A DNA stretch of 40,792 nt from the NCBI GenBank assembly GCA_001179505.1, contig CDMY01000626.1, positions 1-40,792 on the forward strand, read 5' to 3'. Each line of letters opens with the position of its first letter. The first letter of the stretch is position 1. Shown piece after piece: positions 6,661-40,792 of the stretch. The notes beneath the pieces were generated by a model. That model saw only the letters and a program-made list of their open reading frames with translations. It was not told where the DNA came from and made no database searches. A program made the translations under genes and the position numbers. This stretch comes from Vitrella brassicaformis CCMP3155. Taxonomy: Eukaryota > Protista > Chromerida.

Positions 6661-7467
6661 CTCAAGCGACCCACCCAAGAGAGCATCGCTGTCATCCCTC
6701 ACTCCCGTGTAGCCCTCAGGCTCGTTGTCGCTGTGAGTCCACTGATAGAAGCTGCGGATGTCGGCAGCAGGCGGGCCATCGTCAGTGCGGCCGGCACCCA
6801 CGATGATATTTCCACCGATTGCCATATTCCCGCCCTCCACACTCCCCTTCCTCCCCGCCACATGCACATACTGCCTTTCTCGTGGTATCTCGATCTTGGT
6901 CGGTCTGGGGAAGTGGCCGGCCAGTGAGAAGTGCCACACATCACAGAAGTACTCGTGCGAGCTGGTCGGGTCCTCGGGCGGCTGGATGCCGGCACTGATG
7001 TACACGCCAAAGACATAGTTAGTTGTCCTTCCTGACCACAAAGACGAGAGGCTTTGCATCGTCCACATTGTCCAGCAGGTCGCCATAGGTGGTGCCGTGG
7101 ACAGACGTCCTACACACACACACACACACACACAGACGGAATGTGCCAATTCGCTGCTGTTGCCATGATGCGTGTGTCTACCGGTAGAGTGAGGTGAGTC
7201 GTGTGGTGTCGCGACTGCCCCCCAGTAGGCCAAGCAGCGCCTCATACTCTGACGCAGACAGCGACGTGCCGTCAGGCAATCCCTGCAGGTGGCGGAAACG
7301 GACCTGAACACAGGAATGAACCGTGCACACCAGAGAATCTAGTGACTGGGTCATGGTGTGTAAGTCCGTGTGTGTGTGGGTGTACTCACCTGTTGTGCGG
7401 GTCTTGCCTCCGTGCCAACAGTGGTCGACACCACACAGAGAATTATCACCATGACAACAGTCGCCAT
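6619..7467 (-). pseudogene. Signal peptide plus single TLDc-like domain gene, frameshifted
   Basis: Exons 7467-7390 (MATVVMVIILCVVSTTVGTEARPAQQ), 7303-7182 and 7109-6619. TLDc-like motifs: LTSLYRTSVHG, YVFGVYIS, LLGGSLEFVADEVEV. A 4-nt duplication (agttagtt, 7017-7024) creates an in-frame TAA after RKDN, whereas the paralogues read KD[QEK]YV[FI]G without a break. Confidence 0.75.
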
Positions 7468-8068
7468 CGTGAAGCACCTTGTTTGTTGAGGTCAATCAGA
7501 GGCCGCTCGCCAGCCAAAAGAGGAGAGCGGGGGAGCGCTGACAGCGCTGACACCAGGATTCGGTAGACAGGACACTGTCGGCTTTGATAGATCTCTTCTT
7601 GGAGCTGCACCGGGGGAGGAAAGGGAGAAAGAAGAAGGGAAGACCGCAAGCAATTCTCCGTCAGTCGGATTCACGGAACCTAAAAGCCCGGCATAAGTAT
7701 CGAGACCCGGTTTTGATCCGGGGACCTTTCGCGTGTTAGGCGAACGATCTTCCACTGATCTACCCCGACAGATGCAAACCCAGCGGCCCTTCCACTCCTT
7801 ACCTCGGGATGGGACGCTTTTCGATCCATTCCCCTCCGTTGTTGATGGTGGTGAGATCGGAAACGGATGAGTGAGGGTTCTTCCCTCTCGCGCTGAGTGA
7901 CGGTTCTTCCCTCTCGCATTCTATCTCTCCCCTTCTACCTCTCCCCTCTCCCTCTATCTCACCGGCTCTTCATTCATCAGCCCCTCTTCATCTATCAAGC
8001 TTCTCAGCACGAGCAATCATGGCAGCGGCGAAGCCCACTGAATTGGACCTGGAGTTGGGCGATCTCCC

Positions 8069-10958: not shown

Positions 10959-11293
10959 CCTCTGAAGGCCCGAGCTCTCTCGCGCCTGCGCGCTAAGCTA
11001 CCCGGTTGGTTAGGGGAGATGTGGTTTGGAGAGCGGTATCACGGAATAGGGAGGGAGGGAGGGAGGGGAGGGTTCTTCGTCCTCCATCTATCCATCCATC
11101 CATCCATCTATCTATCCCTCTATCCCTCCATCTATCATCAGGCAGATATCGTCCCAGATCTTCACTTCCCACCTTCGAGCCTTCCACCTGATCTACTCTT
11201 GCCTCGCCCTCTCTCTTGGCATCATCACCTTGATCCTTCCTCGACGACTCGATTATCGCTCTCTATCGCCCTGTTATCTATCTATCGTCGGCA

Positions 11294-13016
11294 ATGGCTC
11301 AGCTTGCGGGAATCGTGTGGACTCTGCTGGTCGCCCTGTCCCTGGTGGCCAGTCAGCCCTCTGCAAACAAGACCCCTACGGTTTCCTACAGCACATTCAG
11401 CCTGGTGAGTGATGGAGCCGCCAACGACCAGCCGAGTGTCCGTGCCCTCAGCAGTCCGCCACCGCGTCCAGCTGGTGCAGCTGGCATCCACCGCATCATC
11501 GTCAAGCTCAAGCACCCACACACCGAGGGCCTTGCCCGCGCAGAGACCATCTCGAGGGCACTGCAGGTGTCCCTGTCAGCCGAGACCACCGTGCACACGG
11601 CTGAGACGACGGTCCACCACCTCAACAGCTTGTCCATGGACGTGGTGGATCTGCCGCTAGGTGTCGATGCAGCGGCCACATGCGAGGCTGCCCTCCTGGC
11701 GTCGGATGAGATCGACATCTGCGAGCCGGATGCCGTTGTTGCGACGGCCTCTGGCCGCAGGCTGCGTGCCCGGGCAGCACAGGAGCCCAACCGCTTCGTG
11801 CCCGACGACCCAATCTTCAAGGAGCAGTGGGGGATGGCCAGCATCGATATGCCCGAGGCGTGGGCCTTCCTGTCTGAGCAGCAGCAGGAGACGGACAGTG
11901 GGGCCGACTCAGTGGGCAAAGGTACGGTGGTCGGGGTGATTGACACCGGTGTCGACTACACCCATCCAGACCTCAAGGACGCCATGTGGGTCAATCAAGG
12001 CGAGATCGCTGGCAACGGCATCGATGACGACGGTAGGCAGGGAGGGAGGGGGGGAGGGAGGGAGGGAGGAAGGGACATCCACACACACGATCTGCATGCA
12101 TTCCTGGGTCTGTATGTGTCCACTGCAGTGGAACGATAGCGGCGACTGCCAACAACCAGGAGGGCATCGCAGGCGTGGCATTTGGCAGAACCAAGATCAT
12201 GGCACTCAAATTCCTCTGCGGCGAGGTAAGTCGAGTAAACATAGGGTCGCGGGGCGCTCAAATCACATGTCTGTGTGCGCCTACATCAGGATGGTAGTGG
12301 GTACACCGCTGACGCGCTCCACGCGATCAACTATGCCGTTGCCATGGGGACCACACTGACAAGCAACAGCTGGGGCTCCCTTGGGTCTAGAGCACATCCA
12401 GGGCTCGAGGAGGCCATCAGGGAGGCAGAGGAGGCCGACATGCTGTTCGTCGCCGCGGCTGGCAACGACGACAACGACAATGACGGCCCCAGGAAAGGCT
12501 ACTCGGCATCATCTGAGCTGGACAGCATCATCAGCGTCGGCGCGTCGAATAAGGAAGGAGAGAAGGCGTGGTTCAGCAACTACGGCCTAAAGAGCGTTGA
12601 CGTATTTGCGCCGGGGACGAGAATCGCCTCGACGATGCCCGGTGGCAAGTATAGCTCATCCAGCGGCACCAGCATGGCAACGCCATTCGTCGCTGGTACG
12701 CAAGCACTGAGGACTGCTGTGTGATACCCATTAGACGATCCACTCAATCGCTGCTTTGTCTGTGACTTCAGGTTTGGCTGCCCTTCTGTGGTCGATGGAT
12801 CCGGCGCAGAGCTATCGCGACATCAAGCATCGCATTCTGTCGACTTCCGAGAAGATGGACTCGCTCGAGGGCCTGTGCGTCACGGGGGGCCAGGTCAACG
12901 CACTGAAGGCCATCACATGTGCCGATTGCAAATGGACCCCCACGGAGGAGCCGACGGCGGCTCCGACGGAAGCCCCCACGCAGGAGCCTACGACGGAGGA
13001 GCCGAGGACCCCGTAA
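11294..13016 (+). CDS. Subtilisin-like S8 serine protease precursor; catalytic-His exon absent in this assembly
   Basis: Signal peptide, prodomain, catalytic Asp VIDTGVDYTHPDL, oxyanion AAGN, catalytic Ser GTSMATP and a C-terminal PTEEPT repeat. Exons 11294-12032, 12129-12225, 12290-12695 and 12772-13016. Exon 1 ends in phase 1 but the next exon needs phase 2, and no HGT motif is present. Confidence 0.9.
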
Positions 13017-13288
13017 GGGCCCCCCAGGGCTGGTTCGCTGACGAGAAGCTGCACTGACGGCCGGGGGGAAGACGGCCGGGGGGAAGACTGCCTGCCTGCC
13101 TGCCTGCTGTCTGTAGCGGCGGATATGTATGTGTGTGTATGTCTGCGGCATGTTGGTGTACTGCACTGTCTGTGGTTCGCTGTGGTGTGGTGTGCTCTAG
13201 CTTAGTAAGTGAGATTCGTGTGTAGGTAGTTCTTCGTTCGTTCGTTCGTTCGCTGGTCGGCCGGCAGCGCCGCGCCAGTCACTGCCAC

Positions 13289-13864
13289 TCACTGTCTCGC
13301 GCAGCCTAGTCGGCTGCATCTGCTCTTCGTTGTGTGTGAATGAAACAGCTCTCTCTCTGTCTGTCTCTCTGTCTGTCTCTCTCTGAATAGCTCTCATTGT
13401 GCATACACTCGTACGTTAGTGTGTGTTATATCGGTGCTTTGTCAAGTCGTCGGTGCACCGAGTTCTGACGCGACCTGACGTGATGTGCCCTGCCTGAGTG
13501 CTTCGTTGTCTTTGTTTGTGTGTGCTGTGCTGTGCTGTGCTGTGCTGATTCTTTGTTAATAGCAACTTACTGTACTCACTGCATCTGATGTGTGTGTGTG
13601 CGTGTGTGCGGTCCATGTGGACATATCCATTCCATGAGGGGGGGGATGGGGGGGGAGGGATGGGAGGGACAAGAGACAGACCCACGAGAGACGCATGCCG
13701 TGCCGACAATCACGTCAAGTGAAAAATGACATCATGATGATATCGCTAACTGACACATGTGCCCAATTGTATGTATGAGAGCGAAAGTGCACAGCACGCG
13801 GCTCGCGACACCCATCGCCACAGCACACAAACATTGTCGCACAACTCAAATGCCATTCATTCAT
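13289..13864 (+). repeat. ~575-bp non-coding segment duplicated in inverted orientation at 40225-40792
   Basis: For example tgtctcgcgcagcctagtcggctgcatctg at ~13293 is the reverse complement of the window end. High similarity continues to caactcaaatgccattcattcat. Confidence 0.92.
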
Positions 13865-14395
13865 AAGTACTGTCAATCCCTCCCCTCATTCGTTCATCCC
13901 TCATTTGGCATCTCCACCGCCTCAATCGGATTGACGTCATTTCATGTGAGACATCAGATTGAAAGGGACCGGAGTGACTGAGTGACGATTTGAGTCTGAT
14001 GTCGGTCGGGCTGATTGGCTGTCCGACTGCTTTACCTGTCACAGAGACACCTGCAGGCCGTTGATCATCAATGCGGCACACCAACGAACGCGCAATGCAC
14101 CCCTTCAGCCGACAATCACATCCTCACACACACACACACACATACGCAGGCCTCAGTTGTTTGATTGAGGCGGCATGAGTCGGCCGATCGGCCAGGGAGC
14201 AGTTGGCGGGCATCAGGCTACAGATGTCCAGCGGTCATCACGGAGCGCTCGGCAGGCGTCAGCGGCCCCGGTTCTCTGCCTCCAAAACCCGGTTCTCTGC
14301 CTCCAAAAACCGGTTTTCTGTACAACGCTGCTGGTTTTGTGTACAGGGCAGCTGGTTTTGTGTACACCGCCAAGGCGGGCATCAGTTTGACCATC

Positions 14396-14721
14396 GGTGA
14401 GCGGGGGAGCGTCCTGTCCCGCCGTGTGTGCGCGGCTGCCCAGCAGCAACAGGGAGGTGGTGGGCCACATGGAGAGTGTGGATGGCAAGATGGTGCGGGT
14501 GCTGATGCAGTGCTTCGCCGTGAGGGCCGGGTCGAGTGTGCGCCGGCTGGGGGTGCGTCAGGTGGTGCACAAGGCGCGGCTGGACGAGGTGGTGGCTAGT
14601 GGCGGCTCACGGGCTGCAGGGCGTCGTCAAGGGGCTCAAGACCCACCTGGGCAACACCGACTGCGTGTTCCAGTGGGGCCAGCTGGGACGTGTTCCGTTT
14701 GTGGCGCTGGGAGTCCACTAA
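14396..14721 (+). pseudogene. Frameshifted coding relic of unknown family
   Basis: Protein-like frame (...EVVGHMESVDGKMVRVLMQCFAV...RLDEVVASGG) appears to continue in another frame (HGLQGVVKGLKTHLGNTDCVFQWGQL...VH*), with the shift near 14601-14610. No clear start or upstream exon. Confidence 0.4.
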
Positions 14722-17683: not shown

Positions 17684-17870
17684 CTGATTGCTGAACGGGA
17701 AGGGGCAAAATGGACTCCGAAATTGACCCATTCATTAAATCACTCATGGCTCATCCGCACCTCCAAAAGGTCCATGTAAGGCATGCAGCTGTCTTGCCGG
17801 CTGTCCGGCTGGCTGGCTCTCTGTCTGTCATTCACTCAACACACACACACTCACACTCGCAGAAACACAT

Positions 17871-18256
17871 CAGGGCAGAATAACGACAAACACACACGCA
17901 GCCACATCCACCTAGTCACTACATTCAGTCCAGCCACCCCACACACACTCACTTCAACAAACAAACACACCAATACACACACACACGGGCCACAAGCAGT
18001 GTGCTGACAGATCAGCTGCACTCAGGCGTGGAGGCATGGAAGCAGACAGACAGGCAGACAGGCAGACAGACAAGCAGACAGACTGGCAGACAGACTGGCA
18101 GACAGACGAGGACGCAGAGAGGACGGCACAGCTAGTGGATGGCACCTATTTATGTTAGTACAGCACCATAGAGGGAAACGCACATCTCCCTCCCTCCCTC
18201 CCTCCCTCCCTGGCTACTGCACCACGTGCAGCACCTCTATCTCATCCGCCATGAAC
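17871..18256 (-). repeat. Orphan TLDc C-terminus (KFMADEIEVLHVVQ*) plus 3' flank repeat, copy B
   Basis: Only the last ~14 codons of the domain are present, followed by the flank shared with 6351-6660. It could serve as a terminal exon (18269-18214). Confidence 0.75.
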
Positions 18257-18389
18257 TTACCGATCTCATCTGACGCACCCACGCATTGTCCCACTCATTC
18301 AATCAGTCAGCAGCTGTCTGTCTGTACGCAGACAGGGCAGGGCCCCTCGCCGACGCGAACACACTCACACAGACATTCACACAAATGCC

Positions 18390-18683
18390 TCAGGGCAGGA
18401 TAACGACAAACACACAGGCAGCCACAGCCACTCAGACGCACCAAAACACACACACACACGCAGGGGCACCAGCAGTGTGCTGACAGATCAGCTACACTCA
18501 GAGGACAGGCAAACAGACAGACAGACAGACAGGAGGGGCGCAGAGAGGACGGCACAGATAAACGGAAGGCTATATCAGTGCAGCACCATAGAGGGAGAGG
18601 CACATCCCTCCCTCCCTCGCTCCCTCTCTCCCCCACTACTGCACCACGTGCGTCGCGCGGCACCTTTATCTCATCCGCCATGA
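18390..18683 (-). repeat. Degenerate TLDc C-terminus (FMADEIKVP...) plus 3' flank repeat, copy C
   Basis: Same flank blocks as copies A and B. The coding remnant is disrupted by a small insertion after gtgc. Confidence 0.75.
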
Positions 18684-18730
18684 AGAGAATGGCCCGCCCA
18701 GATGAACGACACGAACAACTCATGGCTGGG

Positions 18731-21054
18731 TTACATCAAAAACAGGAATAGCGACAGCCACAGACAGACCGACAGACAGACACCCATCTGCGCCGCTGAC
18801 GAAATGAAAGGGGCCGCCTGCAGCACCTCTATCTCGTCAGCCATGAACTTCAGCGACCCGCCCAACACAGGATAGCCCTCCTCATCCCTTCCCATGTAGC
18901 CCTCAGGCATATCAAACAAGGACTGATTGCAGCTGCGGATGTCGGCAGCAGGCGGGTCATTGACAGTGGGGCCAGCACCCAAAATGATACCTCCACCGAT
19001 GTACATATTCCCGCGCACCTCATCTTCCTCCCTCCCCGCCACCTCCACCCACTGCCTATATTCTGGTATCTCGATCTTGGTCGGTGTGGTGAAGTGGCCG
19101 GCCAGTGAGAACCACCACACATCACTGTCGTACTTGCGCCAGGTAGTCAGGTCGTCGGGCTCCTGGATGTCGGCACTAATGTAGACGCCAAACACATACT
19201 GGTCCTTCCTGATCACAAAGATGAGAGGCTTCGCGTCGCCCACATTGTCCAGCAGGTCGCTATAGTTGGTGCCCTGGACAGACGTCCTTCACACACACAC
19301 ACACACACACACGCAGATACACACAGACGGAATCTGCCCATTAGCTGTCAGATGATCCCTCTTGTTGGCATGATGTGTGTCTACCGGTAGAGTGAGGTGA
19401 GTTGTGTGGTGTCATTGCCCATGCCCAGCAGGCCGACCAGCGCCTCGTACTCTGACGCTGTAGGGTAAGGGACCTGCAGACACGATCGTCAAAGGATCGT
19501 CAAAGCATCGAAAAAGTGGATGGGCCGTGTCCATACCTCTAGCACTTCTATCTCGTCAGCCATGAACTCCAGCGACCCGCCCAACACGGCATTGCCATCC
19601 TCATCCCTCTCTCCCGTGTAGCCCTCAGGCTTGTAGAAGCTCAAGGTATACTGAAGGCAGCTGCGGATGTCGGCAGAAGGCGGGCCATTGACAGTGGGGC
19701 CAGCACCCAACACCAGATGCCCCCCGATGATCATATTTGCACCCTCCACATTCCTCTTTCTCCCCGCCACACGCACTTCCTGCCACTCTCGAAGTATCTC
19801 GATCTTGGTCGGTTGGGGGAAGTGGCCGGCCAGTGAGAACCACCACACATCACTGTCGTCTGATGGTAGCTGGTCTGGTTGTCGGGCTCCTGGATGCCGG
19901 CACTGATGTAGACGCCGAACACATACTCGTCCTTCCTGACCACAAAGACGAGAGGCTTTGCGTCGCCCACATTGTCCAGCAGGTCGCCATAGGTGGTGCC
20001 GTTGACAGACGCCCTACAGACACAGACATACACACACACACATAGACGGAATGTGCCCATTGGCTGTCTGTTGGCACAATGTGGGTCTACCGGTAGAGTG
20101 AGGTGAGTTGTGTGGTGTCATTGCCCATGCCCAGCAGGCCGACCAGCGCCTCGTACTCTGACGCTGTAGGGTAAGGGACCTGCAGACACGATCGTCAGAG
20201 GATCGTCAAAGCATCGAAAAAGTGGATGGGCCGTGTCCATACCTGCAGCACCTCTATCTCGTCAGCCATGAACTCCAGCGACCCGCCCAACACGGCATTG
20301 CCATCCTCATCCCTCTCTCCCGTGTAGCCCTCAGGCAGATAATCGCTGCGAGTGGACTGCTGGCAAACACGGATGCCCTCAAGAGGATTATTGTTGCCCA
20401 GCCTCAGCTCATCACCGATACGCACTGTTCGTCCAGAGAAATCCAATTGTCCCTCTCTCCCCGCCACAAGCATCAGCTGATCGTCTGGGGGTAAATCCAT
20501 CTTGGTCGGTTGGGGGAAGTGGCCGGCCAGTGAGAACCACCACACACCACTGTGGTAGTAGTTCCAATCGGTCCGGTTGGCGGGCTCCTGAATGCCTTCA
20601 CTGATATACACGCCGATCACATACTTGTCCTTCTTGATCACAAAGACGAGAGGCTTCGCGTCGCCCACTCGGTCCAGCAGGTCGCTATAGTTGGTGCCGT
20701 GGACAGACGTCCTTCGCACACACACACACGCAGATACACACAGACGGAAACTGCCCATTAGCTGTCAGATGGCATGATGTGTGTCTACCGGTAGAGTGAG
20801 GTGAGTTGTGTGGTGTCATTCAGCAGACCGACCAGTCCCTCATACTCTGACGCAGACATCGACGTGTTGCCAGGAGGGGACACCTGCAGGCCGCGCAACT
20901 GGACCTGAACACACGAGTCAGCCATGGACGCCAGAGAATCTGATGACTGGGACATGGTGTGTGTGTGGATACCCACCTGTTGTGCGGGTATTGCCTTCGT
21001 GCCGACCATGGTCGACACCACACACAGAATCATCATGATGAGAACAGTCGCCAT
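18731..21054 (-). CDS. Secreted protein with three tandem TLDc-like domains; one frameshift in domain 2 (possible pseudogene)
   Basis: Exons 21054-20977 (signal peptide MATVLIMMILCVVSTMVGTKA), 20904-20789, 20711-20243, 20179-20091, 20013-19537, 19473-19385 and 19286-18731. Junction phases match except that exon 5 is 1 nt short (cag-ac-gac-agt versus aag-tac-gac-agt in domain 3, at ~19860). Confidence 0.75.
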
Positions 21055-21670
21055 CGCGTGAAGGGGAAGAGATGAGCGAAGAGGACAAAGATCCTTATTT
21101 GTTGAGGTCAGTCAACACGAGGCCGTTGCCAGCCAAAGAGGACAGCGGTGGAGCAAGCTGACACCGATTCGGTAGAAAGGAAAACCGTCGGCTTGATAGA
21201 TCTCCTCTTGGAGCTCCACCGGGGAAGCGAACGGGCAATAGAGGGTTTGGGTTAGGGCAGACAAATTTAAAGGCAGAAGCTCGCAGGCTAGCTCGCAGCA
21301 ACAGCAGCGTAAAAGTCCCGCTGCCGCTGAGAGTGGCATCCGTGGATAGATCAAGACTTGACCGGCCGTCTGACGCCGCCAGCCGGCGAAGAGTGACGGT
21401 CACAGAGGTGTGCAGACGGACGTAGAAGTCCGGGCAGAGCTGGCTGCCATCGCACTCATCTGAACACGCAACACCAGGAGAGGAGCACGGCAACAGCTGC
21501 TCAACTTGAAGCGCCAGATCATCAATCAGACGATGGCGTCGAATGCGCCAGCCACAGCTCCTCAATACACGGGAGGGTGAGCACGCCAGACAGAGCGAGA
21601 CAGAAGCACGACAAGCACACTCATGCTCTCTCTCTCGTTGCCCTGACGATTATCACACAGCAAGTCGCTG

Positions 21671-28400: not shown

Positions 28401-31400
28401 NNNNNNNNNNNNNNNNNNNNNNNNNNNNNNNNNNNNNNNNNNNNNNNNNNNNNNNNNNNNNNNNNNNNNNNNNNNNNNNNNNNNNNNNNNNNNNNNNNNN
28501 NNNNNNNNNNNNNNNNNNNNNNNNNNNNNNNNNCTCCCTCACACACACTCGTCCATCTCTCTCCATCTCTCTCTCTGTGTGCGTGCGTGCGTGCGTGCAT
28601 GTGTGTGTGTGTGTGTGTGTGTGTGTGAAGGCGCAAGCTCGAGATAACCAAGCCCGCCCACCCTTATGCGTTGGGGTGGGACATCGTCGCCGGCACTGCC
28701 GTCTACAACTTCGATGGCGTCAACATGAGACCTAGCGCAACTAGCTCGGGTGCGCTGCACCATCGGACGGCACGGCACAGCACACATCGTCTCATGACTG
28801 CCTTGGTGTGTCTGTGTGTCTGTCTGACAGGTGCGCAAAAGCAGAAGAAAAAGGCCATCAAGGGCTGCTGCAACTTCAGAAACCCCATCGGTGAGTCAGT
28901 CGGTACCCTCACACACCACACCTGTCTGCGCCGAGATCCATCTGTCGGCTGCGCCTGCCTGTCGCAGGGTTTGCGGCTGCCTGCCCGCCTGACAACAACA
29001 CCGCCAAACAGCCGAAAGAGGTGTTCGGCGTATTCGTCGCACAACAAGTAGCCCCACCACCCACACACACATAGCCACCCACACACGAGTGGACACATGT
29101 GTGTGTGTCTGCCGATGTGTGTGTGTGTGGTCAGGGCACCGACTCGCCCGGCCTGACGTGGATCGAGGGCGTGACGCTCGTCCCGCCCCACGAGTTCTTC
29201 ACCTCCCTCCTGGCCTTCTCACGGCACCACTACGACATCCACCTCATGTGCGAGTTCACCCTGCATAAGGGGACCGTGCTCAAAGGGTGAGCGTGAGTTG
29301 AGTTGAGACCAGCCAGCAGACACACGTATGTCAAATGTGGGTGTGTGTGCTCAGTATGCGTCTGTATGACAATCTGCGGGAGTGGAGTTTCCCGCCGTGG
29401 GACGACGGGCCGATTCTCACACTCACCGACCTGCTCAGGATCAACCATGTACACACACACACATACATAGACACACACGCACGTGTCATCCATCCATCCA
29501 TCCATCCATCCATGTGTGTCTGTGTCTGCACACAGGTGCGTCGGTTGATCTCAGACGCCTTCGGTCCCGTTTCTGTGCACCAAGAGCAGCCGCAGCACTC
29601 GGTGAGTGGGTGGATGGGCACGTGCTGACGCTGTCCGTGTCGCTATTTCTCTGGGTGGGTGGTGTCTCGTGGGTTGTGTTTGTGTATGTGTCAGGCGAGT
29701 GCGCTTGGCCCGCGCGAGCGAGAGGAGACCGAGGTGGCGGTGCTCACCAGCATGGCCGAGAATGCCACTCGAGTGCAGGAGGCACTCAATGTGGTCAGCG
29801 GATCAACAGCCACACGCACACAAATGCATGTGTGTTTGCCTGTGTGTGTGGATGTGGGCAGATGTTGGACTATCTCCACTCACCCGAGTGCGATGAGCAG
29901 GACTACTCATGGATGGCTGACGTCGGTCCCCCAAGGCCCGACTCATACGACGGACTCGGCAGAGAACTCATCCGGTACTCTCAAGCAACCCCCCCCCCCC
30001 CCCCCCCCCNNNNNNNNNNNNNNNNNNNNNNNNNNNNNNNNNNNNNNNNNNNNNNNNNNNNNNNNNNNNNNNNNNNNNNNNNNNNNNNNNNNNNNNNNNN
30101 NNNNNNNNNNNNNNNNNNNNNNNNNNNNNNNNNNNNNNNNNNNNNNNNNNNNNNNNNNNNNNNNNNNNNNNNNNNNNNNNNNNNNNNNNNNNNNNNNNNN
30201 NNNNNNNNNNNNNNNNNNNNNNNNNNNNNNNNNNNNNNNNNNNNNNNNNNNNNNNNNNNNNNNNNNNNNNNNNNNNNNNNNNNNNNNNNNNNNNNNNNNN
30301 NNNNNNNNNCCCCCCCCCCCCCCCCTCACTCATTCCATCTCTCTCTCTCTGTGTGTGTGTGTGTGTGTGTCTTTAGGCTAGGCGAGGACAGGGAGCAGCA
30401 GTCGCAGAGGCAGGGGGGCGGGAAGAAGGGCAAGAAAAAGGGCGGCGGCGGTGGGCAGGCCAACCAGTTGGGCGCGCCGCAGCTGCTGGATGTGTTCGCC
30501 TTCGACACCGCGCCACCGGAGCCGGCTGACGGCGTCAAGATGTGGGAGTTCTTCCGTCCTCTCGCTCTGCGGCAAATGGGCAACTGCCAGGTAACCCCGC
30601 CCACACACAGACATCCATCCACACACTCGTATATGCCCTCTCTCCCTCTGTGTGTGTGTGTGTATGCAGATGGACCAGAGAGCGCGGGAGCTCAACGCGA
30701 TCCGCTCGCAGATGGCCAAGCAGCGAGAGAGAGAGCTGCAGGTGGAGAGGCAGCGGCAGAAGGCCGAGAACAAACGCATCACCGAGCAGCAGCAGGCCGC
30801 CGCGCTGGCCAGAAAGCAGCAGCAGCAGCATCACGCGAGAGGAGGGCGGGGCGGCAAGCACTTCCGAGGCGGACGCGGAGGTGCTGGGGGAGGAGGCATG
30901 CACCCCTACCACCAGACACACCATGGCCACCACCACGGGCACCACCAGATACCGACTCACCATGGCCACATGCCCCGCCCGCATGTGATCCCCCCACCAG
31001 CACCAGCGCAACCCCCCAGCGCGCCGCCAGGGTCGTTCTATGACAGCTTCTCGACTGCGTCATATCCACCAGCCCCACCCGCCCCTGCAGCACACCCCTA
31101 CCACGGGTATGGTGGCCGGTTCCCACAGCCAACACAGCCGCGGGCCCCACAGCCGTCACACACACAGCCGCCCCCGCCCCCCGTACCTGCACAACCGTCT
31201 GCACCCGCACCTGGCCCAGCACCAGCTGCGGCGATGCCCCCGCCGCCCATGAACGTGAATATGAGTATGAATGTGAATGGGCAGAACCAGTATGGCTATG
31301 GCGGCCAGAGTCAGTTGTACCAGCAGCATCAGCAGCACCAGGCCCCACAGCAGCATCACAATGCCGCTGCCTTTGCCCACGGCCAGTACATGCAGCATCA

Positions 31401-31470
31401 GCAGCACCAGAATCAGGGAGGAGGCTACCCAGGGTGGCAACAGCAGCAGCAGGGCTACTACAGGGAGTGA
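21671..31470 (+). CDS. DExH/RHA-family RNA helicase, Spindle-E/TDRD9-like, multi-exon (>30 exons), with low-complexity termini
   Basis: Motif I GETGCGKST (22160-22186), Ia TQPRRLA, II DEVH (22731-22742), III MSAT, IV FLPGIGEI, V ASNIAESSLT, VIDFCL (24925-24942), VI QRAGRTGR (25021-25044), then an HA2-like region. The three N gaps fall within introns whose flanking exon phases agree. Confidence 0.93.
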
Positions 31471-33295
31471 CTCAGGGAGGGAGGAGCAAGGGGGGCATTT
31501 TTGTCAGCACACGCACACGGTGACCACGATTTTTGCTGCCAGCTGGCTTGGCGCATACAAGACCGAGGGAGGGGCACGTGTGTGTGTGTGTATGTATATT
31601 ACCGCGTCGTAATTCGTGCGTCGGTGTGTGGTCGACTGACTAATTGAAGCGGAGGGATGACGTGTGGACTTGTGTGCTTTTGGTGTCTATTTTTCCGCGG
31701 TGCGTGCGTGTGCGGCGTTCCCTCCTTCATTCATACGATGAAAGAGGCGAGGGACGTGGTTCGGTTCGGTGCATTGTGGTGTGCGCAGCAAGGCAAGCTT
31801 GGAAGAAGAAAGCCACGCATCAGTCGCCTTGGTCCAGACAGACAGACACACTGACATCAGTGTCCATCCACAATCTTCTTTATTTTTGTGCCTTTCTCTT
31901 TCATTCGCTCATTTCTCTCCCCCTCTGTTTGCCTGTCTTTCTGTCTACCCGTCTTTCTCTGGCTGTCCCTCCCTCGTGAATGTACAGCCCCCTAAATCCC
32001 CTCCCCCACCCCGCTACACGTAGGTCTGTACCCTCATGCCCCCATGACCCGGTGAGCGAGTCAATTGTCTACGAGTGCGTCTATCTGCTCCTGTCGTTAG
32101 TATACAGGGGATGGAGGCACACAAGCCGGGCGGGCGGGCCGCAGCAGGTGGCGGGCAGGGGAGGGGAAACTGCCCGTTTTGATCTACCTCTCTGGCTGAC
32201 TCACTCTGACTCATTGACAGTTTTGCAGTGGACGGGACGGGAAGGGGTGGGGGGCCCTTTTGTATCATGGACGGAGAGGCGTCGGGAGGCGCATACGTGC
32301 TCGCTGGGTCATTGGCTGACGGACACGGCTAACGGAGGATCGTATGTCGTGTGGCGTGTATGGTGTGGGGGAATTCGGCAGTTTTGACCTGGTCTGCTGT
32401 GATTGCTACAATCGATCGTAAACATAGCTCTCCGGCCGCGCCTCATACTGGCCTCATCATGGTCATACCACCGGAGGCCACCAACCATGGCGCACAGACC
32501 AGCAGGAACCAGGTAACCAAGTCCCTGCGGAAAAAATCACAGTGCCACCATATGCATCGTCATACTTCTCGTACATCGTAAATTCACGACGGTTGCGCCA
32601 ATCGTCGTGAATCTACTCAGACGTCTTCCACTGAGGTGTAAACGTAGGTCGAGGCGTTGTGGCCTTGGGAGCGAGTGTGACTGTTCTGATGGCTGACGTC
32701 AATTCATGGGCCGGCATCGTCGCCGTGAGCGGCATCGGTAGGCAGGCGAGCCGCGAAAACACAAAACACGCATTGCAATACGTGAGTTCTCATTCCTTCG
32801 CTGCTCGATCGTTTGGTGCGTGTCTTGTTGCGTCTTGTCGTGGTGTGTGTGCGAGAGAGAGAGAGTGTGTGAGCGCAAGTGGGATGGCTGCTGTATGAGG
32901 TTGGCCTCGCCCTTATCGCCCTGACTGATGTGTGCTCGATGGACACATGTGATTGATGCGCGTGATGGATGTCGGTGAATGTTTCTGTGTGTGGTGAGAG
33001 AGAATGACCACTGCATCTTGACAATTGAGAAATTCCGCCACGCACACACACACACATTCAAACACATTCACACACTGCAGTCCGTCTGCGTCAATCCACT
33101 CCAGCCCCTCACCCTTGGCGCCCCTTCGTCTCATCCCATTCAGGCAGGCACACCATCCACAATGCATCCACAAACTTATCTGTCTGTCGGTCTCTCAAAC
33201 AGCCATCCTGCCTGCCTCCCATCTGCTGCTCTGGCGTGGCAAGACAGGCAGGCAGACAAACAGGGTCTCTGTACACTCGAGAGTTGAGAAATGAG

Positions 33296-34728
33296 TCAGT
33301 CTACGGCTACGGCTAGCAGACTGCCAAACGCCACCTGTGCGTCGGCTCCCATCACCTGCTGCGCCACCCTCACTGTCTCGGGGAACCTCGCGGCACCCTT
33401 CTTGCCATCCACCGGCCGCTCCGTCGTGTAGAGTTGGGCGGAGGCATAGGACACGTAGGGGTAGTTGATGCTGTTGATGGAGATGTCGGCCTTGAAGGTG
33501 TGGTCCGGCTGATCGCCGCGCCGTGCAGCACTATCACGCGCTGGCGGCGTCCTTCCGCCGCCATGCTGCGTGTGCCGGTGGTGCGGCAGTTCCACACGGG
33601 CGGCTGCTGAGTGGCGAGCTGCCGCTGAAGAGAAAGTGAGATATGACAATGAGTGAGTGGGGCAGCTGGTGAGGCAATCGTGTGTGTGTGTGTGTGTGTG
33701 TGTGACTGACGAGTCGCTCGTAGCCTGGGGTATCCCTGTGCTGCCAGACATCCTGGGCCGCGACTCGCGACTCTCCCCATGGCAGAGGACGCATGGATAT
33801 CCTGATCAGACACACCATGGCAGAGCGGTGCAGCCAATGTGTTCGTGTGTGTCATTCTGGTCGTTTTCCTCACTCATACAACACAGCGTCGCGAAGTGAA
33901 GCATAGGCAAAATCTGCCAAGAGCCACACACAGCCAGACGATCTGTTAGTTTTAGCTCTCCCTTCCCCTCCCTCACCTTCAATCTCACACACGGGCTTGG
34001 CCGGGTCGAAGATATCGCGGAAGTGGCTGTCGGCCGGCAGCGTCTGCAGTGTGCGGATGGTCAGCCGGCACCCATTCAGCCGCTCCTCGCCGTTGTTGTC
34101 GCGCTCCAGCCTCACACCGAGGTGGCGCTGGATGAGTGACAGCTGCCGCATCGCCGCACACCGCCCGTCGAAGACTGCCCGGCTGCCCACCCCCTCCACG
34201 TCAGCATTGCCCACCTCTATCGGCAGTCGCCGCTCCACCCGCCCCCGATGCTTGGCCAATCTGATGATGGGGACCGTCGCCGCCCAGTCGCCGCTGTGGT
34301 CGATGAAGTACGCCAGCTGCAGCAGCAGGTCGATGGACGTCAGGTGAGGGGAGAGGGCGATGATGCCTGTGAGGCCCTTGGCGACGAGCTGGCCATCCAT
34401 GTGCTCCTTGACCTTCTCGAGCACAGTGCTGGTGATGCCTTCCCGGTTCTGGTCGTCGTTGATCTGTGCGATGAGTGCTTGTCTGGTGGGCTCCGAGTGG
34501 GCGGCCTTGCTGATCACCAGGGACCGCAGTCGCAGTCGTGGAGGGGTGGTGGGGCGGACGTGGCCCGATGAAATCAACATTGCCTGACGGATGAACCGAA
34601 CCGACAAGAGAGCGACAGAGCCACCGTGGTGCATGCCTGGCACATGATCTGTCTGTGAGTGCAGCCCTTCATTCACCTGTGGCTGAGGCAGGTCGGCTAC
34701 TTCAGCAGAAGCAGATGATGATGATCAT
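33296..34728 (-). pseudogene. Probable pseudogene of a lineage-specific multigene family (unknown function)
   Basis: Exons 34728-34677, 34583-33977, 33913-33874, 33801-33711 and 33624-33296. Exon 1 is 1 nt out of phase (atg-a-tca-tca-tca). The last exon has a 5-nt tandem duplication (cgccgcgccg, 33514-33523) separating VIVLHG from DQPDHTF. Confidence 0.7.
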
Positions 34729-35370
34729 GGCTTGCGCCGAGCCTCCACTCCTGACACTCCTGGACAGGGGAATCGCTGAGCTCGCAAAACCCTGCGTTCC
34801 AAACCCCAAACCCCAGCTGGGGTTGTGGCGTATTTGGTTTCCCCTCTCAAGTGTTGGGATCTCAATCAGCTAGGAAGAAGGTCCAAAGATCCATCACCAC
34901 GAACGCTCGCAAAGATCGCCTGTGGATGCGGTGAATGTGTGTGCTGGTTTGGCAGATACGTGTGTCGAGGAGGTGTCTTCCGAGTCCGTCGAGCAGCGCC
35001 GCACACAGACAGACCAGGTGGATGACGCGTGTGCAGAGATCTGCTCTTGACTCATCCACTTCTTCTCATCCATCTCTATCTTTCACTCTGACGACTGGGA
35101 GCCCTGACGAGGGATGAATCAGAGGATCCTCATCCGTCAGCCCGCTGCAGCAAGGTCTCTCTATGACAAGAGCTCTTGACGCAGACAATTCATGGGATCG
35201 GCTTGGTGTGGTGTGCCTCCAGGTGACGGCAGAATGATTGATGCTGGATGGCTATAGATTTTGAGGAACGAGGCTGAGGATACGTGGACCCGTCGGCCAT
35301 TGTTCATTGTCCTGGTCATGTGCTTGTGATGTGGTGTGTGCAGTAAGCGCCTGGTTGATCGTGTGGCCTG

Positions 35371-35765
35371 ATGGACACCGATGACGGAGGTGCTGCAGGG
35401 GGGCGGCCGTGTGTCGATGTCAGTGGCTGCCGCGACGTCCTGCACAAGATACACTCGGTGAGGGACGAGGGGAAGAGGACGGCCCGCCAGGACCATCGCT
35501 GTGTTGGGATTGCCTGGCAGGGCGCCTCTCAGATTGCCTCTGATGCTGAGAGGGCAGAGCACATCATAGCCACACACACCGACGACAATTCACAGGTCCG
35601 CACGGAAACACCACACAGTCAGCCGAGCTGCAGCACTTGCTGGCGTCTGTTTCGGTGGTGCAGGATGGTGTGTCCCTCACCGATGCCCACTCGGCTTGCA
35701 ACGAGCTGGCACAGATGTCCAGTGACCGCGAAACACACGTGGGGATTGGACGGGAAGACCGATGA
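35371..35765 (+). CDS. Possible small hypothetical protein (2 exons)
   Basis: MDTDDGG...DDNSQ could splice (cag|gtccgc ... cacag|tca) to SAELQHLLASVSVVQDG...GREDR*. No family recognised. Confidence 0.3.
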
Positions 35766-36584
35766 ATGGCTCACAGAGGCCGACAAGCCAGTGACGTCCG
35801 TCTCTCTCTTGGTGCGTGTTTGGGTTCATGTCAGCGGATGGAAGGCGACGGCAGGCTGTTCCGGTGCATCCACCGGGTGGGCGGTGCTGTAGAGAGTTTA
35901 GTGCCGGTCAGTGTGCACATGGATACACAGACACACAGGCAGACAGATGGATGGACCAGCATCTATCTGTGATGCTTTCTTGGTGATAGGTGCCTGTTGG
36001 CGACGGAGGCAAGCGCGCGTGTGTAGCTATCGAATCGGCTGCTGCAGCTGCTGCAACTGCGAATAGCAAAGGTACACCAACCACACAGGGGTGAAAGTAC
36101 TGAGAATCCCTTGGTCGGTCGGTGGATGTCTGCGGTGCTGCAGCAGCGACACCGAGGCCGATGAACAAACCAAAGGTGACACGAGAAATGACCACCACCA
36201 TGACTGCCTTTACCAATGTGCATGTCTTCATGTGTGTGTCAGAAATACGGCCGTCCGTGTCTGTGTGGTCTGCCTGGTCGGTCGGTTAAGGGTTTGACGA
36301 GACACCTGTCCTTAAGCCCCGCGCTACCTTCCGGCGCAACCAGGCATCTTCTCTGTCCACAGAACACACCAAACAGGCAACAGGCACACGCAGAATGCAT
36401 GCACAAGGCAGCTGCTGGTCTGACTGGTCAGCTGAGGGCTGACGAGCTCGCACCAGTGGCCCGAGGCGATCGGGAGAATAGAGAAGGGAGGGAGGGGAGG
36501 GAAGGGAGAGAAGGGAGAGATCAACACCTCCAACTCCTGGCTTTCGCACCCGAGCATCAACCACTCGATTGCCCATCAACACCC

Positions 36585-37171
36585 ATGGCTCTCTTCTCGC
36601 GCCTGACGCTCTTCGTCCTCGCCGCTCTGCTGGTGGCGGCATGGACGCCCTCAACCACCATGGCCCAGCCACCCTGCATCACGACTCCTGCGCTCGCTTC
36701 CACTACTGCTGCTCCCACTGCTATTGATGAAGCCGACAACGCAATGGGGAGTGTGGATGAGCTGCTCGACGACGAGGAGGACGCCCTGGTCGATGCCGAC
36801 GAGGCGGACATGGAGGATGACGAGGATGATGACGAGGAGGAGGAGGAGCAGCCTCTGACGTCGGGCAACCTGCGTGCCCTTCAGCGAGGTTAGCAACCAC
36901 ATGCAATACTCCCACCGTTTTTCTGACCAGACAGACACTGAGCATCATCCCTATCCCTCGGTTCTGTGTTGTGTCGTGTGCAGGCCGTCGTCGTGGGGGT
37001 CGTCGTGGTCATTCGGGCCATCGTCATGGGGGCCGCTGGGGCCGTGGTCGCTGGGGTCGTGGTCGCTGGGGTCGTGGTCGCTGGCGTCGCGGTCGCTGGG
37101 GTCGTGGTCGCTGGGGCCGTGGTCGTTGGGGCCGCCGGCACCACCACCATTACCGCCACCACCATGACTGA
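36585..37171 (+). CDS. Secreted 163-aa prepro-peptide: signal peptide, acidic pro-region, and cationic (RWGRG)7/His-rich C-terminus
   Basis: Exon 1 36585-36888 ends in phase 1 (cga g|gttagc); exon 2 36984-37171 (gtgcag|gc cgt). Product: MALFSRLTLFVLAALLVAAWTPSTTMA...DDEEDALVDADEADMEDDEDDDEEEEEQPLTSGNLRALQ-RGRRRGGRRGHSGHRHGG(RWGRG)-like x7-HHHHYRHHHD. Confidence 0.85.
37034..37138 (+). repeat. Coding 15-bp tandem repeat x7 (cgctggggycgtggt)
   Basis: Seven units read directly from the sequence; most variation is synonymous in the RWGRG frame. Confidence 0.95.
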
Positions 37172-38426
37172 TGTAAGTGAGACTGAAGGACACCGGGCGT
37201 CCATGTGTGTGTGTTGGTTTCTTTCAGGCCACCGGTCCGATTGAGCCACTCGTCTGCCTGTGGTGTGTGCGTCACTGTTCTTTCATTAAGTGTGCAGAGA
37301 GAGACGTGTATGTTCATTGTGTATGTGTGTCTAGAGCCTTCCTTGTTGTGTGTGTGATGCGTCTGCACTGCATAGTCCGAGGGCGTCTGGTGCGGTGTGT
37401 GTCCTGCCCTTTGCCAGCCTGTCAGTGCATTGTGAATTGTGTTCTTGTTTCTGACTTCACCATGTAGATGGGTTCGCGCGTGGGGGAGGGAGGGTCAAGG
37501 GGAGAAGGGGCCAGGGAAACACCGGGTTTATATCATAAGGGTGTGGTGTGCTTGTGTGCTGTGTGGGCTGAGAGAGGGGTGGATATTCCCTGGTGTGGGT
37601 GTGGGTGTGTGTGGATGTGGATGTGGCGGCCATGATGACATGGCCATCACACGCACACCCACACACCAGTCGTATACACACATTTGTGTGCCACTCACTT
37701 CACTGGGGATGGGTAGTAGCCCTATCTGTCTGTCTGTCTGTCTGTTGTAGTGCATTTCTGTTTTACGTGGGAGGGGTTTTACGTCGTATACGGTCATTTG
37801 TCACTCACTTCAATGAGTGTTTTAGTAGTGCCCTGTCTGTCTGTCTGTCTGTCTGTCTGCACAGTACGCAGCACATACCTTTGTCCTGTATTTGTAGTGC
37901 ATTTGTTTCACATACAAGGTGACCGACACACAAGGGGACACGAACGAACGAACGAACGATATCACCATGAATCGTCACGACAAACATGGAATCAGAAGCC
38001 GTCGGTTCATTCGGTCTATTTACAAACAGTCGACCGACACATACCAAGGCAGCAGCGGTAGCCTGTCTGCATCGCATCGTACCTGGTCGACCGTGAGCGG
38101 CCATCGGTCGACATGTGAGGGACAAGGGAGGCAATAGACAGGCAGAAGCCACACTGTCGTATCAGTGTCAGCAGCTACCACACGGGCAGCTACCACATTT
38201 GTTTGCTCGTCTTAAGACGACGTCTGTGTACGTACAACTAAGTAATGATCACACACACACACACACGCAGGCAAAGTCACATCTGCAGCGACACACGGCA
38301 GCCATCAAGAGCAACATGTCAGCACGTGGAAAGCCCCGAGCCGCAAGCAGAGGCAATACAGGACGACAACGGAAGAAAAGGCAAGTACATGCAGACGGAG
38401 ACATCCACAGCGTTAGCGTGGCACAA

Positions 38427-39970
38427 GTCAGGTAAGGGGAGGCAAGGAACAAGTCAGAGCTCTGTAGCTGAGCTGCAGCGGTGGATACACCTCAATTGTC
38501 GACACCTGACAGGCATAATTGACAAGATATGGAAGACGACCATGTGTCTCCATCTGTATCTGCCCGACGCACACTCACATGTTCGCCCTTTCTGTGCCTT
38601 TGTGACTTGGATGCTGACTTCGATGCCGCCCCCGGCTGTGTAACCAGACCAAAGACCCTGCACACGTAAGAAGGCAAAACCTCTCTCACTTCACAGCATT
38701 CCTTCGATGTATTCCTCACTTTTCCGCAAGATTAAGGTTCGGCACTCTCGGTCTCTTGCTCGTGCGCATCAACGACGTCTCACCCTCACTGACACCGGTA
38801 GAGCGGAGAGACTGCAACCGGCCTCTGTGTCTCTCTCTCTCTCTGTTCCTCCTTTCTCTTCTTTTTTCTTGGGCAGTGTCGAAGCGCACGCGGCCCCTTT
38901 CAGTGATCTGAATGGGAGCTGGCTGCTCCTTCAGCAGTGGCAAGTTGCGGAGGTCTGCGGGGCAAGAGAGACGTGGGTGAATGTCTGCGTGTGCATATAC
39001 ATGCTGACGCACCTGGTGGGATCATGTCCTTGTGTCCGAACCGCTCCTGTTTGAGAACGGGTATGCCCTGGGCGCGCTGCTCCTCCAGCAGCGCGTCGAA
39101 CATGTCTCCCAGCTCACGCTCCAGCCGCCGATCGGCCAAATCACGAAGCATGGCCTGGCGGGGAGACTTGAGCTGAATTTGTGCCCGCACGAGACGCGGC
39201 GTGATGGTGTTGGAATGACAGATGTCTTTTCCCCTCCGTCCATTGTCGCAGACCTGGTTGATCGACGCTTGTGTGACGGATGAGGCAGACGACAGGTCTC
39301 CTGTCGCCGTGCTCGCCCCGGGCGAGCCGACACCGTCATGTACATCCGGCTGTTCTCCTTCCTTGTCTTCCTCTGCTGCTGCTTTTGTTGGTTGTTCCGG
39401 TGCTGAAGGAGGTTGTTCGGCAGCCGGCTGGTCGTCCTGCTCTGGCTGTGGTGGTGCCTGGTGGATCTTGGCGGATGCCCGGGCCCAACTCGCTTCCCTC
39501 GGCTCCTTGATGTGGTTGTCAATCCGATACTTGGTGCGACGAAACAAAAGGGGATGAGTGAGTGTTCTGCCGCACAGACACATACTCAGAGATAGCATGT
39601 TGGCAGCGATAATCGGCTAAATGTTGCTCTCTCACTTGAGCCTGAAGGGCTGTCGTCTCCTTCGCGTTGGTTTCTCCCCATCAGCATCTTCGTCCGCCGG
39701 CCTCTTGCCCTCATAGATGGCCACGTCAGGCAGCACCGCCACCAAAGAAAGAATCCGGTAATCATACCACTTTCCCAGCGATGACACGGCTCCGTCCTTC
39801 TTGATCAGGGCCGGGCCGCGGAGAGGTTTCGATTTCTTGTCCTTGCCCGCCTTCTCGTCCGGCGTGTTTGCCTTGATGAGTGGGACCGACGGGACCAGCC
39901 GACGTTCTCTCGATGTGATGGTGCTGCGAGCAGTGCTCGAGCCCGGACGCGATTCAACCATCGTGATCAT
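38427..39970 (-). CDS. Hypothetical low-complexity, basic protein (~5 exons)
   Basis: Phase-compatible joins FRLK|TLTHPLLFRR, DMIPP|DLRNLPLL, NLAEK|VFGLVTQ and KGEH|VSTIEVYPP...LT*. Start uncertain (39970 or 39961). No domain recognised. Confidence 0.6.
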
Positions 39971-40224: not shown

Positions 40225-40792
40225 ATGAATGAATGGCATTTGAGTTGTGCGACAGACAATGCTCGTGTGCTGTGGCGATGGGTGTCGCGAGCCGCGCGCG
40301 TGTGCACATCTCGCTCTCATGCATACAATTGGGCACATGTGTTAGTCATACCATCATGATGTCATTCACTTGACGTGATTGTCGGCACGGCATGTGTCTC
40401 TCGTGGGTCTGTCTCTTGTCCCTCCCATCCCATCCCCCCCCTCCCCCCCGTCATGGAATGGATATGCACACATGGACCGCACACACGCACACACACATAT
40501 ATCAGATGCAGTGAGTGCAGCCACTTGTTAGCTATTAACAAAGAATCATCACAGCACAGCACAGCACAAACAAACAAAGACAACGAAACACTCAGGCAGG
40601 GCACATCACGTCAGATCGCGTCAGAGCTCGGTGCACCGACGACTTGACAAAGCACCGATATAACACACACTAACGTACGAGCGTATGCACAATGAGAGCT
40701 ATTCAGAGAGAGAGACAGACAGAGAGAGAGAGCTGTTTCATTCACACACAACGAAGGGCAGATGCAGCCGACTAGGCTGCGCGAGACATTGA
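40225..40792 (-). repeat. Inverted copy of 13289-13864, truncated by the window edge
   Basis: Reverse-complement match including tcggtgcaccgacgacttgacaaagcaccgatataacacacactaacgtacga. Confidence 0.92.

Follow-up and report, generated by a model that had tools for sequence, protein, structure and literature searches.

The 40,792-nt stretch of DNA analysed here, contig CDMY01000626.1 of Vitrella brassicaformis CCMP3155 (hereafter the window), carries at 36585–37171 a gene that appears to be unannotated and whose product is predicted to be a secreted pre-pro-peptide, in which a polyanionic propiece is followed by an Arg/Trp/Gly/His-rich polycation. All positions are those of the whole window and refer to the + strand unless stated. 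Exon 1 extends from ATG 36585 to 36888 and exon 2 from 36984 to 37171, ending with the stop codon TGA (37169–37171); the spliced coding sequence of 492 nt is conceptually translated into a protein of 163 residues.

The gene is real and expressed, being transcribed and spliced in the RWG frame. Contigs from four public runs were placed on 35500–38500, of which X1 and X2 are RNA-like and X3 and X6 are DNA-type. The 36888/36984 joint is carried by contigs of the RNA runs X1 and X2 only and is missing from the DNA-type runs, and RNA contigs tile the whole coding sequence. The splice borders are G/GT at the donor (36888/36889) and AG/G at the acceptor (36983/36984), and the intron interrupts the Gly codon directly after RALQR, which is the boundary between the acidic and basic parts of the protein. 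The repeat of exon 2 contains no stop in any of the three forward frames, as expected for low-complexity DNA, and it is the RNA junction that selects the RWGRG frame. Scans for Rfam families and tRNAs across 35900–37800 gave nothing above threshold. The DNA depth over the gene is about 1.5–2.7 times that of its flanks, with half-depth variants at 37207, 37237, and 37258, and these features fit a second close copy.

The predicted signal peptide (residues 1–27) has a hydrophobic core (LTLFVLAALLVAA), reaches Kyte-Doolittle values of up to 3.05, and ends in TMA. Residues 28–46 form a Thr/Ala/Pro spacer, and residues 47–89 (43 residues; 36723–36851) form an acidic tract with 26 Asp/Glu that is followed by PLTSGNLRALQR. 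The tail after NLRAL consists of 64 residues (24 Arg, 19 Gly, 10 His, 7 Trp, one Asp, and one Ser, with no Lys or Cys) and has a net charge of +23, an isoelectric point (pI) of 12, and a mass of about 8 kDa; through its His residues, the computed charge increases with acidity, being about +24 at pH 7 and about +31 at pH 5.5. The Trp residues stand at an exact 5-residue spacing (120, 125, and so on to 150), and the underlying DNA contains a 15-bp tandem repeat (37034–37131; 6.5 copies, 91% matches) in which three of the four differences among units 1–6 fall on third codon positions. The whole precursor is an extreme block polyampholyte with a net charge of about −1 at pH 7, and its segregation of acidic and basic residues exceeds that of 100,000 out of 100,000 shuffles. 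The tail is predicted to be disordered, as its AF2 model has no secondary structure (pLDDT 61, pTM 0.12); ESM Atlas features for the tail were uninformative (best score 0.68).

Most of this had been foreseen from the letters alone in the original prediction, which proposed the 36888/36984 junction, an intron almost exactly between the acidic and basic parts, and the order of signal peptide, pro-region with 26 Asp/Glu, NLRALQ, and basic tail. The junction is present in the RNA, the intron is in phase 1 at the expected boundary, and translation returns the proposed order together with the proposed 24 Arg, 7 Trp, 10 His, and single acidic residue of the tail. The PSSW/SLGSW and AVVVG frames that it had named as counter-indications are not those used by the RNA. 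Its formula (RWGRG)7 is correct in the number of units; strictly, six of them are RW[G/R]RG and the seventh is RWGRR (Table 1).

Table 1. Coordinates of the peptide gene, its parts, and associated features in the window
Feature	Position	Strand	Basis
Upstream introns	35458–35520, 35596–35663, 35739–35834, 35907–35989, 36072–36143, 36176–36242	+	RNA
5' untranslated region, minimum extent	36518–36584	+	RNA contig X1 spans 36518–36612
Predicted signal peptide, residues 1–27, MALFSRLTLFVLAALLVAAWTPSTTMA	36585–36665	+	hydrophobic core, T-M-A at −3/−1
Propiece, residues 28–99: Thr/Ala/Pro spacer, acidic tract, PLTSGNLRAL	36666–36881	+	net charge −25; aligns with the propieces of P0001–P0003
TSGNLRAL block; RAL is a candidate RxL-type processing/sorting motif	36858–36881	+	T, S, G, L, R, A, L invariant in 4/4 members
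Intron 1, 95 nt, GT..AG, phase 1	36889–36983	+	junction in RNA runs X1 and X2
Cationic cargo GRRRGGRRGHSGHRHGG-(RWGRG)n-RRHHHHYRHHHD and stop TGA (37169–37171)	36984–37171	+	coding part of exon 2
Seven 15-nt units: RWGRG x3, RWRRG, RWGRG x2, RWGRR	37034–37138	+	translation, tandem-repeat detection
His-rich C-terminus HHHHYRHHHD	37139–37168	+	translation
Intron 2, 55 nt, GT..AG, one base 3' of the stop codon	37173–37227	+	joint in RNA runs X1 and X2
Vestigial terminal mini-exon T/GC CAC CGG TCC GAT TGA (would read C-H-R-S-D-stop)	37228–37244	+	alignment to paralogues
3' untranslated region, minimum extent, including the block CACTCGTCTGCC... conserved in all family genes	37245–37413	+	RNA X2 contig 37228–37413; alignment, blastn
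Stretch 74–75% identical to the DNA directly preceding the paralogue-adjacent subtilase	40354–40792		blastn

A family of prepro-peptides and the start of the gene

Relatives of the gene were sought with exon 1 and exon 2 separately. Word-index protein searches gave no passing match for the signal-peptide region (two sub-threshold candidates are probably paralogues) and none for exon 2, and Pfam returned nothing meaningful for either exon, including no Dickkopf_N, cathelicidin, or cystatin-like match. An exhaustive phmmer search of exon 1 against 1.84 billion representatives yielded three relatives, P0001–P0003. P0001 is an unspliced open reading frame (ORF) on an ENA metagenome contig. P0002 (CEM10085.1; named 'Dickkopf N-terminal cysteine-rich domain-containing protein' in UniRef) and P0003 (CEM10064.1; uncharacterised) are paralogues encoded on contig CDMY01000400.1 of the same strain, with E-values of 4.7e-15 and 7.1e-12; the window sequence differs from that contig and is found exactly in public runs. 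A family profile search recovered the same three and none further, a scan of JGI metagenomes with the family alignment gave pattern matches with no confirmed relative, and neither the phmmer nor the profile searches met a public protein model with this exon 1. The window has no second copy of exon 1 or of the signal-peptide DNA.

Alignment indicates that the N-terminal 99 residues are homologous to the two annotated Vitrella proteins and to one metagenome orthologue, and that they define a small, lineage-specific chromerid family of predicted secreted pre-pro-peptides, designated here the MALFSRLTL / TSGxLRAL prepro-peptide family from P0001–P0003. Identity to P0002 and P0003 is 52–57% across exon 1 (tblastn) and 58–66% in the matched stretches (phmmer). 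In the signal peptide (MALFSRLTL..LLVA.W.PS.T.A), 24 of the 27 positions are invariant or conservative in four sequences, and in the AF2 model of P0002 the equivalent residues 4–20 are helical. TSG-x-LRAL is invariant in all members and is followed by the phase-1 intron (RAL^G in the paralogues, RALQR^G here). The RAL motif belongs to the best-conserved block outside the signal peptide, and because this block here ends two codons (QR) before the splice site, the donor site alone cannot explain its conservation. Intron 1 is itself homologous to the introns of the paralogues (score 47–48, against a shuffle mean of 13), whereas no DNA homology is detectable between the cargo exons (14–16, against 13–14 for shuffles).

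The cargos of the paralogues are of a different kind. That of P0002 has 59 residues, is rich in Lys, Trp, and His, contains eight Cys, and matches Pfam Dickkopf_N (PF04706; 33.4 bits against a cutoff of 25), the sole match in the family. Its AF2 model is a confident small β-rich domain of two β units (pLDDT about 80–89), for which Foldseek found only non-significant similarity to small-disulfide folds such as Dkk and ICK toxins (E ≥ 0.065). The P0003 cargo has 26 residues with four Cys and is of the Arg/His/Trp type. In the P0002 gene (10144–10580 of L001), all three introns are in phase 1 and two cargo modules lie on separate symmetric exons, a layout that, judging from the gene structure, allows modules to be duplicated or exchanged without loss of frame. 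Beyond the shared stretch 36583–36637, read contigs diverge into ..TSMAQ-VCVT.. and ..TSMAQ-ECV..; at least two further family members are present in the genome, one of them expressed, and are absent from public protein sets.

The conserved leader would also suit a bipartite plastid or periplastid leader. The general pattern of such leaders in the red lineage is a signal peptide, an aromatic residue at +1, and a transit-like stretch. Cut at VAA/W, the protein would expose Trp20, which is invariant in the family, ahead of residues 20–46, which are rich in Thr, Ala, Pro, and Ser and contain no acidic residue; the protein would then act inside a plastid complex, for example as a nucleic-acid-binding polycation. 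This transit-like stretch lacks any basic residue and runs into 26 acidic residues, and the 4- and 8-Cys disulfide-type domains of the paralogues, one of them a Dickkopf_N domain, typify the extracellular route, so that a plastid destination is very improbable. Two RNA-related readings of the tail, as an RGG/GAR RNA-binding segment and as a GW/WG Argonaute hook, were rejected in view of the signal peptide and the family context.

The start at ATG 36585 has to be weighed against a longer protein of about 420 residues starting at ATG 35371, in which the hydrophobic stretch would be an internal membrane helix. A spliced transcript lies upstream at 35371–36409 (+), with six short GT..AG introns seen in RNA (Table 1); its only open frame has no stop before the ATG of the next gene, and it is open and in frame from ATG 35371 to ATG 36585. 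The X1:X2 depth ratio, however, is 55:26 over the upstream exons and 18:104 over the peptide gene, about 12-fold apart, which indicates that the gene is expressed independently of the upstream transcript. Positions 36410–36480 are uncovered by RNA contigs, although a contig of the DNA run X3 spans this stretch, and the orthologous contig L004 lacks window positions 32424–36439 entirely, yet keeps the gene. In the paralogues, the frame is closed by stops 5 and 25 codons 5' of the equivalent ATG; one of these stops is confirmed by cDNA, which is available for P0002, and the family similarity begins at this ATG, both in the protein alignment and at the loose ends of reads (36583, 36637). The sequence context before the ATG is likewise conserved in the paralogues. 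An internal helix is on these grounds extremely improbable. The upstream transcript may be non-coding, or it may derive from a young gene or from one that ends in a repeat. Its 3' part, at about 36207–36409, is a dispersed element of roughly 70–100 copies that is also found in RNA: word depth is about 1,700–2,700 in the DNA runs, compared with about 25 in the flanks, and reads diverge at 36276 and 36409.

The Cys-free cargo and charge balance

The cargo typical of the family is Cys-rich, with C-x5-C-x5-C-xn-C units of which the last Cys is placed on a terminal mini-exon; the cargo encoded here has no Cys. In the paralogues, the last phase-1 intron lies just 5' of the final Cys codon and a tiny last exon encodes CKKH-stop or CFRRY-stop. 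In an alignment with the P0003 and P0002 genes, intron 2 of the window gene matches this last intron: TGA T/gtaagt ... cag/GC CAC CGG TCC GAT TGA here corresponds to AAA T/gtaagg ... cag/GC TTC CGG AGG TAC TGA in P0003. Intron 2 is thus a relic of the last coding intron of the family, which implies that the repeat took the place of a Cys-rich cargo. From this alignment, the gene is a Cys-free derivative of a Cys-rich ancestor, in which the cargo exon was replaced or overwritten by growth of the 15-nt repeat and a new stop arose one codon before the old last intron.

The orthologue on the metagenome contig L004 is about 93% identical in nucleotide sequence over 36500–37300 and keeps the ORF intact from ATG to stop, together with its two introns and the PLTSGNLRALQRG junction. 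Its product has 170 residues and differs by an insertion of 18 nt in the propiece, by the lack of one repeat unit, and by additional His residues; the C-terminus reads HRHHHRHHHD with an additional HHHHH run. The Nei-Gojobori ratio of nonsynonymous to synonymous substitution rates (dN/dS) between the two genes is 0.48 overall, falling to about 0.3 for the tail; these values are based on some 24 substitutions and on a repeat whose alignment is ambiguous, and replacements in the tail are limited to Arg, His, Gly, and Tyr.

The charges of the two halves were counted with the leader ending at TMA or TVA and with LRAL as the junction. Propiece and cargo carry −25 and +23 in the window gene (sum −2), −29 and +24 in the L004 orthologue (sum −5), −15 and +13 in P0002 (sum −2), and −9 and +6 in P0003 (sum −3). 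In every member, the two charges offset each other. The propiece of the window gene is much more acidic than those of the paralogues, in step with the larger charge of its cargo, which points to co-adjustment of the two halves. Across three independent family members, this correlation is suggestive of what the net-charge-balance hypothesis proposes, namely that an anionic propiece neutralises the cationic part of the precursor, as in defensins and also in frog peptides (PMC7073735).

The same data bear on whether the gene is simply decaying or neutral, that is, a family member that lost its Cys-rich cargo through repeat expansion and a premature stop and is transcribed without a specific function. 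The cargo exon without homology to the paralogues, the stop one codon before the former last coding intron, the variation in repeat number and His runs between window and orthologue, and the three open frames of the repeat would all be expected of such a gene. A decaying gene would not be expected to adjust its propiece after the change of cargo (−25/−29, as against −15/−9 in the paralogues), to keep its ORF, splice sites, and stop in the orthologue with a tail dN/dS of about 0.3 and replacements limited to a few residue types, or to reach an RNA depth in X2 about four times that of the upstream transcript, and the raised DNA depth also speaks against decay. We consider loss of function decidedly unlikely.

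Maturation and possible role of the released peptide

As read from sequence, the precursor is built like those of defence-peptide and toxin families: a signal peptide, an anionic propiece, a cationic part, and a multigene family with variable cargo. Such gene families characteristically combine a conserved prepro region with a hypervariable cationic cargo. In the proposed course of events, the signal peptide would be removed after TMA on entry into the endoplasmic reticulum, and the acidic propiece would fold back on the polycation, so that the cargo stays soluble and does no harm within the secretory pathway. The precursor would then be cut by an endoprotease at LRAL or just after it, and trimming at RRR/RR sites is possible. 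Candidates for this step are an RxL-directed enzyme and the secreted S8 subtilase that adjoins the paralogues. Outside the cell, the cut would release a disordered Arg/Trp/Gly peptide with a His-rich end, of about 8 kDa and pI 12, whose most likely role would be to bind and disrupt anionic microbial surfaces. At acidic pH, the His residues might contribute about seven further positive charges; alternatively, they might bind metal.

For this whole chain, ending in a role of the released peptide in defence or competition, we estimate a probability of about 0.5. The original prediction had likewise proposed a secreted defence peptide, and had recognised no family for it. The first proposal gains from the signal/acidic/cationic layout and from a family in which the charges track each other. 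The second is superseded by the paralogues P0002 and P0003 and the metagenome orthologue, with a Dickkopf_N domain as the P0002 cargo.

Several points weigh against a defence role. Secretion, cleavage at RAL, and activity are all inferred from sequence, and the signal peptide is called from inspection and family conservation. The motif RAL fits neither PEXEL (RxLxE/Q/D) nor TEXEL (RRL), and the tail does not resemble helical lytic peptides, since it is 30% Gly and lacks amphipathic periodicity. Linkage of the S8 subtilase to both paralogues was inherited through a segmental duplication and so counts as one observation. The charge correlation has three independent members behind it, the dN/dS values rest on the small number of substitutions given above, and indels of 15 nt or 3 nt in a repeat preserve the frame automatically, so that a maintained frame is not evidence of selection.

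The main rival to the defence reading is that the cargo is a material or packaging polycation, that is, a cation-π 'sticker-spacer' peptide that coacervates and is not a weapon. It could pair with the acidic propiece of the same precursor, with polyphosphate, or with acidic polysaccharides of the wall, and the products would be dense secretory-granule cores, a sporangial wall, or a cyst or adhesive matrix. The designer peptides WGRGRGRGWY and WGRGRGRGWPGVGY, which have the same W/G/R pattern, are reported in simple coacervation (PMC12954654). The predicted disorder of the tail and the block-polyampholyte nature of the precursor are consistent with this behaviour, and the diatom silaffin precursor Sil1p has a like order of parts (PMC4557024). 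By contrast, the compact disulfide-rich cationic mini-proteins of the sister genes typify bioactive peptides and not matrix, and the combination of a conserved prepro region with a hypervariable cargo marks an arms-race family. Moreover, the tail lacks the Lys/Ser KXXK motifs of silaffins, and no silica is known in the organism. A structural role thus appears unlikely.

Charge-matched propieces in the precursors of cationic defence peptides are textbook knowledge in animals and plants, and Arg/Trp-rich peptides are established antimicrobials; to our knowledge, and with no literature search aimed at this point, no such precursor has been described in alveolate algae. The kind of system, a charge-neutralised cationic precursor, is known; novel here are the lineage and the prepro cassette, together with the LRAL junction and the (RWGRG)n-His cargo. 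Within the family, P0002 and P0003 share with the window gene the homologous signal peptide and propiece, TSG-x-LRAL, intron 1, the last intron, the block in the 3' untranslated region, and a cationic Trp/His-containing cargo with balanced charges; their cargos are folded, with eight or four Cys, and Lys- or Arg-rich, whereas the cargo here is a Cys-free, Gly-rich repeat.

Precursors of mammalian α-defensins and frog-skin peptides also combine a signal peptide, an anionic propiece, and a cationic, hypervariable mature part with offset charges (PMC7073735). They differ in having no sequence relation to this family and in a junction of the KR/RR type in place of LRAL, and the host here is a free-living alveolate alga. 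Indolicidin, tritrpticin, puroindoline-derived peptides, and synthetic RW repeats resemble the tail in the dominance of Arg and Trp and in being non-helical, extended, or disordered. They consist of 6–13 residues with about 25–40% Trp and derive from cathelin-type or other precursors, whereas the tail has 64 residues, 11% Trp, 30% Gly, and a His-rich end. Membership of the cathelicidins was rejected, as Pfam finds no cathelin-like pro-domain in exon 1.

Sil1p consists of a signal peptide (residues 1–19), an acidic domain (residues 20–107), and seven basic repeats, with RXL processing motifs (PMC4557024). The precursor described here has the same succession, with seven short basic repeats and an RXL motif between the parts, and its RAL resembles the RXL sites of diatom wall-protein precursors in general (PMC4557024). 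Silaffins are Lys/Ser-rich and heavily modified, contain KXXK, and have RRIL/RRNL after every repeat (PMC4557024), whereas the tail here is of the Arg/Trp/Gly/His type, has a single RAL, and shows no homology to them. Silaffin membership was rejected, as the tail has no Lys and one Ser and the single RAL lies upstream of the repeats. The designer WGR condensate peptides, in which Trp/Arg stickers are spaced by Gly, are synthetic 8–14-mers (PMC12954654), compared with a natural 64-mer and its matched polyanionic propiece.

The PEXEL and TEXEL motifs of plasmepsin V and ASP5 substrates likewise place Arg-x-Leu after a signal peptide, and occur in close apicomplexan relatives; TEXEL sites are described as able to lie far from the N-terminus (PMC4764566). 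In the present family the fifth position is R, H, or P and not E/Q/D, RRL is missing, and cleavage at RAL is putative. Membership was rejected on the same features, since RALQR, RALGH, and RALGP have no E/Q/D at position 5 and RRL does not occur.

A broader synthesis, which we regard as quite unlikely in its entirety, would be a modular chromerid 'prepro cassette' system, in which one exon would provide the signal peptide and an RxL-type processing site along with a polyanionic, tunable chaperone, and a phase-1 intron would join it to freely exchangeable cationic cargos. The Arg/Trp/Gly cargo, a natural sticker-spacer polycation, would be stored with its own propiece as an intramolecular complex coacervate and activated by cleavage together with pH or metal, and the RxL step would represent an early, free-living version of the PEXEL/TEXEL processing found in apicomplexan parasites. 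Among free-living organisms, this alga is the one most closely related to those parasites, so that RxL-type maturation in its secretory pathway, if true, would bear on the origin of PEXEL/TEXEL export. Apart from this, the family documents a disulfide-rich peptide gene turning into a linear repeat polycation while the delivery cassette is kept, and it offers a clean natural test of the charge-balance idea. Designer condensate peptides have a natural counterpart in the (RWGRG)n tail with its His-rich end, a peptide that is cheap to synthesise and assay.

The S8 subtilase neighbourhood and other features of the window

A gene for a secreted S8 subtilase lies about 2 kb downstream of both paralogues, in convergent orientation. 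Its product has a signal-like N-terminus and a Pfam Peptidase_S8 match, with no P-domain listed, and from sequence and position it is a candidate convertase for the family. The right-hand end of the window resembles the DNA that directly precedes this subtilase (Table 1), and an equivalent gene beside the window gene would lie beyond the end of the window. Between 38900 and 40000 on the − strand there are long ORFs of 232 and 122 residues, and RNA contigs cover 37866–38500; these indicate that another gene sits between the peptide gene and the expected subtilase, an insert that is lacking at the paralogous loci.

Three copies of the S8 subtilase were located, at 11049–13741 (+) in the window, 12614–14456 (−) in L001, and 12552–14457 (−) in L003. 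The copies are 86–95% identical and have 532 residues where annotated. Two of them adjoin the P0002 and P0003 genes, and the window copy has no detectable member of the prepro family beside it.

Comparison of L004 (1–1821) with window positions 30320–32424 reveals that the segment matching 30320–31079 is inverted relative to its neighbour, after which L004 jumps from 32424 to 36439. An inversion and a 4-kb presence/absence difference thus separate close lineages. A further unit recurs with 74–88% similarity at 6351–7468 and 17728–21086 of the window, 18636–19822 of L003, and 20060–20593 of L001. It overlaps genes with Pfam TLD matches on L003 and is present in at least three tandem copies at 17.7–21.1 kb of the window.

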